Notes under the pieces: generated by a model
The model's input: only the letters and a program-made list of their open reading frames with translations
What the model was told of the DNA's origin: nothing
Database searches by the model: none
Translations under genes and position numbers: made by a program
Assembly: GCA_002269645.1 (NCBI GenBank)
Contig: NIVC01001021.1
Span: 186,001 to 250,000 of the forward strand
Length of the DNA stretch: 64,000 nt
Reading direction: 5' to 3'
Source: Macrostomum lignano
Lineage: Eukaryota
In this document: piece by piece, positions 29,601-32,600 of the stretch
Numbering within the stretch: position 1 is the stretch's first letter
Layout: each line of letters begins with the position of its first letter

Positions 29601-32600
29601 CCAAGTCAAATTCGTAACCAGCATAGGAGTTTAAGTGACATTAGGCATTTCCATAGTTTGTCATAGGCGGAGAAATTAGTACTCGGAGAAATTAATTATT
29701 AACATCATTACAGTGCACAGTATCATGGCGAACAAACTCCTTTATACTCAATAATACTCCCGAACTAATCCGTCATCCGTTTAGCACGCGTTCAACATTC
29801 TGAACTTCGATCAGGTGGATTTATAGGCTCAAAAACACCTGTCAAAGAAGTGAGAAATCGTTAGGTTAAGAATGCAACCAACGGTAGAGAAGTAGAAGGC
29901 AAGCGATTTGCCGGAGCCGCAGCCACTCCATGTCTGATAGAGTCGCTTATGGCTGCAAAGGCTGAGTTGAAGACAAAAAGTGGCAACACGATGCGGGGCT
30001 ACTTGAGTCGATTGAATGGCCTCCGTATCCAGCCTCCCCCCCCAGCCTGTTGAGAGCTGTAGGAGAAGGTCTTCACTAGAAAAATCAATGCTTGGCATCG
30101 GACTTTTTATGGAGCGTTACAGAGCCGCTCTTCTCTTGTGGCTCTCTCTGCTTGAATCCAATCTACTACATTACCTTGTACGATTAACATTTAAGGTTAG
30201 CCTACTAATTACTCTAAGCGGTACAATAGCAGCTTAGAAAATGATTTCGGCGATGATTGACTGCAACACCAATAATAAAGTTTATATGCGCACTCAACAG
30301 TTGATTTGCAGAAGTTTGGATCGACTACGGATGCTGAGTTTAATTAGGTTATTCAGCCAACAGAGTGGCTCGCATGCAATTTACACGCTTGCACGACATT
30401 AACAACTATTAGGAAAATAGGGAACTGGCCAGTGAGTGGTTACTTCAAAATGTATCTTTGTAGCTCGGGCTATTGTTGTTCTCTATTCATTCTTCGTTGC
30501 GCTTCTTCCAGTCGTAGGTTCCAGGTTGGACAAAGCGCTTCTTCCAGTCGTAGGTTCCAGGTTGGACAAAGCGCTTCTTCCAGTCGTAGGTTCCAGGTTG
30601 GACAAAGCGCTTCTTCCAGTCGTAGGTTCCAGGTTGGACAAAGCGCTTCTTCCAGTCGTAGGTTCCGGGTTGGACAAAGCGCTTCTTCCAGTCGTAGGTT
30701 CCGGTTGGACAAAGCGCTTCTTCCAGTCGTAGGTTCCAGGTTGGACAAAGCGCTTCTTCCAGTCGTAGGTTCCGGGTTGGACAAAGCGCTTCTTCCAGTC
30801 GTAGGTTCCGGGTTGGACAAACCTCTTTGAATGGGCCGTCTCGCTGTCATCGAGTGAAGCAGTAGAAGCCGCACCACGAGCCGATCCAATCTCGAAACAG
30901 AGAGCGCACATGGCAAGCAGTACCACTATCAGAGCAGGCCTCATTGCTACGAGTTTTGTTCCCTATTCACTGAATCTCTCCAAGCAGATTTGCAGATCTT
31001 TGCAACTTCCTATAAACTAGTTGAAACTGGCAAATGATGCAAGCAGTCTTCTATTTCCGATGGGCACCTCGTTCATATGTACCTCCCTGCGACTAAAACT
31101 CATTGGCTAAATCCACAGCAAGGACTCTGAGCCATGTCACTGCCAATGCAATGAACCAATGGGATCAGAACTAGCATGCACTCATTAATGGAACGACAAA
31201 ATCGATCAAAAGTAGCCAAAAGCTTTACGCCTGGACAGTTAAATACAAAAGGAGGGAATCATAGCCATGCGTAGAATAAAGAACTCAGATTAAATGGGTC
31301 TGAAGTCGATGCAAGTGAATAATCAAGATACTCGTATTATGACAAGACGACCATAAAAGAATAATCGAAGGACCTACGCTCGTATTTTGAAGTGCCACGA
31401 TTCAAGCTAGTTTAAGACATTTCAAAGTTCGGGAATTAGCCGTAGGTTAGTCTATCGTGGACAAGATGGACAAAATCTCAATATTAATGAAATCAAGCAC
31501 TGAGACACGTTCCAAACGGATGTGTTCAATTAGCTAGCTGCATTATTACAAAAATTCTACGTGCTTGAAACGTGAGCTCCTTTGTCCCGTAGATTTGATC
31601 TAATAAGACCCGGCTTCGACCGCCTCTAAATCCTGCTTTGTGATCCCTACCCGCGATACATTCGCCTGCGCGCATTATGTTTCAGATTGAAGAATTCATT
31701 CGAGCCGCCCTATCGTCTCATCACCACGCAGGTCAGGAATTTGTGCGACGCATCAGCAAGACTGGCAGCAGTCCGTCGTTCAATTTGCGCACCAGTCCCA
31801 GGAAGGGCTCCGTCATTGACATCAGCGGCGCGGCGGGCCTCTCCGCGGTAAGTTCTGGCCTATCGTATGCGACTGTCTAAGGCTCTGTAGGTACAGATGA
31901 AAGCTACAGATTCCATCCTAAATAAGTACAAAGGTTTGGATTCCGTGCACAAAAATTGGGCCTGTCGTGCGAAGCACAGTCGGTGGTGTACATGCCATGT
32001 GTGAGTGTGTGCCTGCCTACGCATCTGTGAGCGTTTGCGTGCTCAGGGGCATGACTGCTTACTGGAGTCAAGCATCGCCTTAATTAGTCCAAAGCCCATT
32101 AAGAACTAACTGAGCTGCACAGGAAAATACGAATCTTCAATAGTTTTTTTTACTTTTTTGACTTCAATAAAGCATGAAGTGACAGTGGGCCTGTTCCATA
32201 AAGCCATCGTAAGATAAGGTCGTCCTTAGCTCCGATCTCCGCAGTGTTGAAGTTCCGATGTACGATCGAACTTACGCTACAATAGCTTTATAGTACGACC
32301 CCAATAAAAATACAATTCATTTCCAAGAATCAAGCATCCAAGGCAACTCTTTGAAACTTTTTTAGAATTTTGTTAAAAGTTAAAATACTGGCTTGAAAAA
32401 AAATGTATGATTATAACTTTTTATATATTGTCTCGTCTTAAAGGGAACAAAAGCACTTATTTTTTACTTATCGCAGATAGCTAAAAGGCTTTTCCGTTTT
32501 ATTTTCTCTATTCAAACCAGCTTGGAATTGTGAGGCCATATGGAGGCCCATTGTTTCATTTTCGCTTTTGCTCATTTAGCGATGCCAGTTTTTTCTCTCT

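Follow-up and report, generated by a model that had tools for sequence, protein, structure and literature searches.

Does a tandem array of 36-nt units on the minus strand of a Macrostomum lignano contig encode the precursor of a secreted signalling peptide? The array lies in a stretch of 64,000 nt (hereafter the window) from contig NIVC01001021.1 (GCA_002269645.1, assembly Mlig_3_7), for which record coordinates equal window coordinates plus 186,000, and it forms the major part of a gene running from 30944 to 30487 on the minus strand. We found that this gene is real, transcribed and already deposited as an uncharacterised protein. The reading that best accounts for all observations, to which we assign a probability of roughly 0.6, is that it encodes a convertase-processed, non-amidated signalling peptide, FVQPGTYDW, which is probably neuronal. 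The locus itself would then be a single-exon gene for a small secreted prepropeptide, an assignment that we regard as reasonably probable.

The initial annotation described a minus-strand layout consisting of a signal peptide, an acidic spacer, nine KR/KKR-flanked repeats and a short NEE tail, and both translation and Tandem Repeats Finder confirmed this arrangement. The features of the precursor and its 3′ flank are as follows.

30882..30944, minus strand: start codon and predicted signal peptide MRPALIVVLLAMCALCFEIGSA, residues 1-21, from hydropathy
30944-30942, minus strand: ATG, first codon of the precursor
30822..30881, minus strand: acidic pro-region spacer RGAASTASLDDSETAHS, then the first dibasic site, KR, from the translation
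30499..30821, minus strand: nine head-to-tail 36-nt units coding FVQPGTYDW plus KKR, from the unit table
30821, 30785, 30749, 30713, 30678, 30642, 30606, 30570 and 30534, minus strand: starts of the nine units
30679..30713, minus strand: unit 4, 35 nt, with its proline codon one base short (between 30703 and 30702), from the unit table
30487..30498, minus strand: C-terminal tail NEE plus TGA (AAC GAA GAA TGA), in the frame of units 5-9
30483..30485, minus strand: TAG stop at which the frameshifted ORF of the assembled sequence ends (153 residues), from the list of open reading frames (ORFs)
30339..30344, minus strand: possible polyadenylation signal ATTAAA, located 142 nt past the stop, of presumed function

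From the ATG to the first repeat, the minus strand encodes MRPALIVVLLAMCALCFEIGSARGAASTASLDDSETAHSKR. The N-terminus combines a charged MR start, a 14-residue hydrophobic core whose Kyte-Doolittle hydropathy over 9 residues reaches 3.39, and a small-residue G-S-A site, after which, at Ala21, the −3/−1 rule would place signal peptide cleavage. Tandem Repeats Finder reported a period of 36, 9.0 copies, 98% matches and a score of 618 for the array. Eight of the nine units code exactly FVQPGTYDWKKR, and the sole nucleotide difference is a synonymous CCC/CCT proline codon. The computed monoisotopic mass of FVQPGTYDW is 1111.497 Da and its isoelectric point is near 4. Two further claims of the initial annotation were borne out as well. 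There is no Gly amidation donor, as Trp is followed by K/R basic residues in all units; the 25 or more family units examined all read W-K-K-R or W-R-K-R, none with Gly. The array is also frameshifted in unit 4, which reads CCGG instead of CC[C/T]GG. The ORF that starts at the ATG of the assembled sequence accordingly contains only three in-frame peptides before running out of frame to a total of 153 residues, and units 5-9 with the NEE-stop tail lie in another frame than the ATG.

GenBank already holds a model for this gene, hypothetical protein PAA73271.1 (BOX15_Mlig017890g1), whose span is exactly 30487..30944; its locus, L003, is identical to window 20487..40944 (100% identity over 20,458 nt). 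Since the annotation of the M. lignano assembly was built by StringTie/TACO on RNA-seq and mapped de novo transcripts (PMC5730564), a minus-strand gene model implies RNA evidence. The initial annotation had named the lack of a minus-strand transcript as a refuting outcome; the RNA-derived model on that strand speaks against such a refutation. Two of its other statements had to be abandoned: automated annotation did not miss the gene, although it retained only four of the nine units, and the gene does not lie inside an intron of another gene, as no annotated gene overlaps it in window 20487..50752. That interval holds only three annotated genes, all on the minus strand and mutually non-overlapping.

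As deposited, PAA73271.1 has 92 residues and four units, and its model omits 179 nt that include the frameshift and correspond to five units minus one base. The same shortening recurs in the family: the deposited proteins have 92, 92 and 85 residues with four copies each and are shorter than the uninterrupted genomic ORFs. At a locus on contig NIVC01000415.1 (L001, 10001..10423), the genomic ORF has 140 residues and eight units and the deposited protein 92 residues; at the more distant Mlig001773g8 locus (L004, 10001..10402), the corresponding figures are 133 residues, eight units and 85 residues. In each case the model omits 144-179 nt, a whole number of repeat units (in the window, minus the deleted base). 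The short models are probably due to repeat collapse in short-read transcripts.

The repaired window protein matched PAA83548.1, PAA73271.1 and PAA59548.1 (Mlig017890g3, Mlig017890g1 and Mlig030851g1) as well as PAA48327.1 (Mlig001773g8). Across the family, precursors are 133-152 residues long with units bounded by KR, KKR or RKR (nine in the window, eight in L001 and eight in L004). The NEE tail also occurs in the intact copy L001, in PAA73271.1 and in PAA83548.1, and ATTAAA is found at the same distance in L001 and 137 nt after the stop in L002, a copy at the end of contig NIVC01002254.1.

The paralogue L004 has an intact ORF of 133 residues with eight copies of FSAPGTYDW separated by KKR or RKR, preceded by a signal-like N-terminus of its own and an acidic spacer ending in KR, and a blastn comparison with the window gave no match at E<1e-20. 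Four codons of its peptide (Ser, Pro, Gly and Thr) differ from unit to unit, in each case synonymously; amino-acid changes are limited to K/R swaps in the basic sites. Ahead of the first peptide, the window copy and L004 agree at only 11 of 41 positions (~27%), as against 9 of 12 within the repeat unit. Neither F1 nor PGTYDW differs between the two, and the Arg of the cleavage site persists despite a codon change from CGC to AGG. An exhaustive profile search brought in a third type in M. lignano, with five copies of FSAPQAFDW/FSAPHAFDW (UniProt A0A1I8HD77). On sequence comparison there are thus at least three paralogue types in this species (FVQPGTYDW/FAQAGTYDW, FSAPGTYDW and FSAPQAFDW), with the family motif F-x-x-[P/A]-x-x-[Y/F]-D-W with two or three basic residues after it. 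Judged from these alignments, the peptide and its cleavage sites are kept as the rest drifts, which is the pattern of bioactive-peptide precursors.

In separate observations on these copies, Tyr7 of the peptide (T-Y-D-W, within 30499..30821) adjoins Asp, and tyrosines so placed are sometimes sulfated; this is speculation, and since Phe replaces the Tyr in the third paralogue, any such sulfation would not be essential to the family. A CCAATGAG motif was also noted upstream of both start codons, ~160 nt away in the window (~31100) and ~220 nt away in L004 (~9780); it may be a common CCAAT-box promoter element or a coincidence.

We propose the following route from gene to peptide. The signal peptide would direct the precursor to the secretory pathway and be removed near Ala21, a PC2-type prohormone convertase would cut after each KR or KKR, and a carboxypeptidase E/D-type enzyme would trim the basic residues. 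This would release eight to nine copies of FVQPGTYDW, whose C-terminal Trp would be free and non-amidated, there being no Gly ahead of the basic site. M. lignano has a known pc2 homologue that gives an RNA interference phenotype (RNA815_2403.2; PMC4490696), and non-amidated, KR-flanked multi-copy peptides of Schmidtea mediterranea, such as GAYYDPIGGGLL and QFDPIMY, have been detected by mass spectrometry (PMC2953531); a processing route of this kind is therefore established in flatworms. To judge from the precursor, the most likely role of the peptide would be that of a neuropeptide or peptide hormone with a putative receptor, and F1, P4 and the [Y/F]-D-W-COOH end would be the likely receptor-binding part.

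Several points weigh against this reading. The identity of the units could result from concerted evolution of the array alone, which weakens the argument from selection within the gene; the comparison between paralogues is not affected by it. Most known flatworm neuropeptides are amidated, and the M. lignano peptide is not. The exhaustive profile search of 1.84 billion representative proteins returned relatives in M. lignano only, so that cross-species conservation is lacking in that set, and the gene identifiers of the family were not found in the supplements searched of PMC7336406 or PMC5816591. Finally, the window copy carries three private 1-bp deletions within 430 nt, which could mark a decaying duplicate.

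The other searches agreed with the profile search. Word-indexed protein searches found M. lignano proteins only. Profile matches P0006-P0031, as far as they were inspected, were rejected as low-complexity repeat proteins, and Pfam gave no family above its gathering threshold with a significant stretch for the precursor; the matches EZH2_WD-Binding, NOPS and YtkA were discarded as summed repeat artefacts, EZH2_WD-Binding and NOPS having 0 significant stretches. A search for a [YF]DW[KR] repeat in precursor supplements (planarian, mollusc and other lophotrochozoan, and nemertean, brachiopod and phoronid) gave no multi-copy match; a single, unrelated YDWK occurred inside a GNXQN precursor. The literature searched for the peptide, its sub-motifs and the gene identifiers held nothing relevant, although an earlier description in a flatworm catalogue is possible. 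The peptide family hence appears, from these comparisons, to be undescribed and Macrostomum-restricted; the initial annotation, which could not match the peptide to the families that it listed, had called it possibly undescribed.

The deletions bear on the alternative that survives best, namely that the window copy is a true frameshifted pseudogene, a recently inactivated duplicate, with function residing in intact copies elsewhere. Being limited to the window copy, this alternative could hold for a neuropeptide and for an exocrine product alike. Over 4 kb, L001 differs from the window by 41 substitutions (~1%) and 11 indels, and it has an uninterrupted ORF whose first unit reads FAQAGTYDW. 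L002 (1..3270, against window 28500..31759) differs over the 3.2 kb adjoining its contig end almost exclusively by 1-bp indels, with ~26 indel events and 5 substitutions. Its array has three 1-2-bp deletions of its own, yet an intact CCC where the window has its deletion. The L002 copy looks like an unpolished contig end, and its deposited protein, PAA59548.1 (145 residues), is a frame-broken model. We had considered L002 to be the same locus with errors, a view that was revised when a three-way alignment showed three distinct close copies. In this alignment, 1-bp deletions private to the window occur only at 30705, 31090 and 31133, with none in the other ~6 kb compared.

The broken frame as assembled and this clustering of private deletions favour a pseudogene, as does the genome of DV1, a line with additional chromosome copies and with 180 Mb in duplicated blocks of ≥95% identity (PMC5730564), so that redundant copies are free to decay. 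Conversely, nothing else in the window copy is disabled (ATG, signal peptide, the remaining units or stop), unit variation is synonymous only, and the deletion falls in a C-run of a tandem array, where PacBio consensus errs. The assembly was made with Canu on PacBio reads and polished with short reads only, via Pilon. The 323-nt array is near-perfect and recurs at three or more near-identical loci, so that short reads have no unique placement there and Pilon cannot resolve it. L002, a sister contig with several such 1-bp errors in its array, retains CCC at this very position. Given the limit of short-read polishing and the intact CCC of L002, we consider an uncorrected long-read (PacBio) assembly error the likelier cause of the unit-4 frameshift, with good but not high confidence, and a pseudogenising mutation possible but doubtful.

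Less probable, and in our estimate unlikely, is that the same precursor and processing serve an exocrine product of gland cells (prostate/seminal fluid, pharyngeal, epidermal or adhesive), which would act outside the body as a pheromone, a mating-transferred allohormone or a defence peptide. Exported peptides, among them yeast alpha-factor and amphibian skin peptides, likewise come from precursors in which a signal peptide stands before many identical KR-flanked copies. The restriction of the family to M. lignano in all searches and its expansion to at least three paralogue types would suit such a role and would fit the fast-evolving reproductive and secretory genes reported in Macrostomum (PMC7336406, PMC5977470). 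Nothing positive points to glands, however, and Cys-free, linear nine-residue peptides in eight to nine identical copies with a conserved C-terminus are most typical of neuropeptide precursors. The absence of the gene identifiers from the searched supplements of the reproduction-gene paper is a weak point against, as the files may be incomplete. Still more speculative, and improbable at present, is that the FxxPxx[Y/F]DW peptides are a Macrostomum-restricted signal between individuals (for example, an allohormone in the ejaculate or another secretion) or a flatworm neuropeptide-receptor pair without a bilaterian counterpart. If true, an allohormone manipulating the behaviour or physiology of the partner in a reciprocally mating hermaphrodite would explain both the lineage restriction and the expansion of paralogues. 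A convertase-processed signalling peptide of probably neuronal origin is the reading that we prefer to either.

The last alternative, a non-coding 36-bp minisatellite that is gene-like by chance, is effectively refuted: although ~25 other tandem arrays lie in the window, the genome is repeat-rich and the array is open in all three frames of both strands, it has an in-frame ATG and signal peptide, synonymous-only variation, a transcript-derived gene model, a conserved ATTAAA signal, and a paralogue invisible to blastn that codes the same PGTYDW core and KR/KKR spacing behind its own signal peptide. Tandem and simple repeats make up 15% of the M. lignano genome (PMC5730564), and with ~25 other arrays in the window, a 36-bp array alone means little. 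The precursor layout is nevertheless more than chance. A hydrophobic N-terminus together with four dibasic sites was found in only three of the 139 ATG-initiated ORFs of at least 50 residues in the window, namely the peptide ORF, a glycosyltransferase family 21 (GT21) membrane protein and a repeat-array ORF at 8875.

The region 2200..25730 is very densely packed with tandem repeats, which are scattered as far as 63286 and produce strong GC-skew swings and many spurious long ORFs. One of these, a 518-residue ORF at 3294..4850, was rejected as a gene, being a 9-bp repeat array with no annotated gene. An ORF at 82..1020 on the plus strand, which starts with TTG in the ORF list, encodes mariner/Tc1-type transposase and helix-turn-helix domains (Transposase_1, E=5.8e-13; HTH_32; DDE_3) and is probably a transposon remnant. 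Upstream of the peptide gene, at a distance of 8.5 kb, is the GT21 gene, and the L001 copy has the same neighbour. The neighbouring genes and main arrays are listed below.

39496..40752, minus strand: GT21 gene, single-exon, 418 residues, ceramide glucosyltransferase-like (Pfam E=6.9e-45)
45966..46400, minus strand: annotated gene of 144 residues, no Pfam match, within a longer ORF at 45966..46637
3089..4849: tandem array, 9-bp unit ×194
6754..8000: tandem array, 56-bp unit ×22
11238..12646: tandem array, 61-bp unit ×23
13450..15125: tandem array, 15-bp unit ×111
22033..23144: tandem array, (ATCT)n
25171..25729: tandem array, (TGA)n

Regeneration, stem cells and sexual conflict are studied in M. 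lignano as a transgenic model, and no catalogue of its neuropeptides was found in the literature searched. If confirmed, the present family would be an undescribed, non-amidated, Trp-terminated addition to the signalling peptides of this animal, comprising at least three paralogue genes. The locus also exposes a systematic annotation fault, as the deposited four-copy proteins understate the eight to nine copies in the genome, and the same undercount probably affects other repetitive peptide precursors of this genome. In other respects this is a routine kind of discovery that opens no long-standing question.

How does this precursor compare with known multi-copy systems? Among those considered, FCAP of molluscs and rotifers is the closest in layout: a signal peptide is followed by 6-28 copies of a short, non-amidated, KR/KKR-flanked peptide with a free Trp end. 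In Aplysia, the FCAP unit is KR-ALDSLGGFQVHGW-KR/KKR, and the family is lophotrochozoan (PMC6425005). FCAP peptides, however, have 11-13 residues and the consensus xLDSLGGFQVHGW, whereas the M. lignano peptides have nine residues and read FxxPxx[Y/F]DW, and the variable spacers that separate the copies of FCAP precursors have no counterpart in M. lignano, where the copies abut directly. Membership in FCAP was rejected, as BLASTP against the Aplysia precursor gave E=0.5 with only W-KKR aligned.

Within flatworms, planarian Smed-ppp-1/2 and SPP-16 share precursors of ~150 residues with back-to-back, KR/KRR-flanked, non-amidated peptides of 7-12 residues, but their motifs, xxYYDPIGGGLL and QFDPIMY, are unrelated to that of M. 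lignano. Membership in the pedal peptide/orcokinin family was likewise rejected: the sequence does not contain the xxDxIGxxxL/F motif, and BLASTP against Smed-PPP-1 gave E=8.8. Planarian prohormone tables contain no xDW-KR peptide. The acoelomorph LWDY/AWDF peptides (PMC6188537) are also clade-restricted and non-amidated, with evenly spaced copies and an aromatic/Asp/aromatic C-terminus. Their order is W-D-[Y/F] as opposed to [Y/F]-D-W and they belong to a different phylum, so that the likeness, taken from their description, is compositional only. Wamide/MIP and APGWamide peptides share a C-terminal Trp and multi-copy precursors; membership in the Wamide (MIP/GLWamide) and APGWamide families was rejected because the Gly amidation donor that they require (W-G-[KR][KR]) is absent. 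Clade-specific multi-copy peptides are common in invertebrate surveys, one of which lists 14 clade-specific types (PMC6188537). Set beside these systems, the M. lignano gene is an ordinary, lineage-restricted example of the classical neuropeptide-precursor design.

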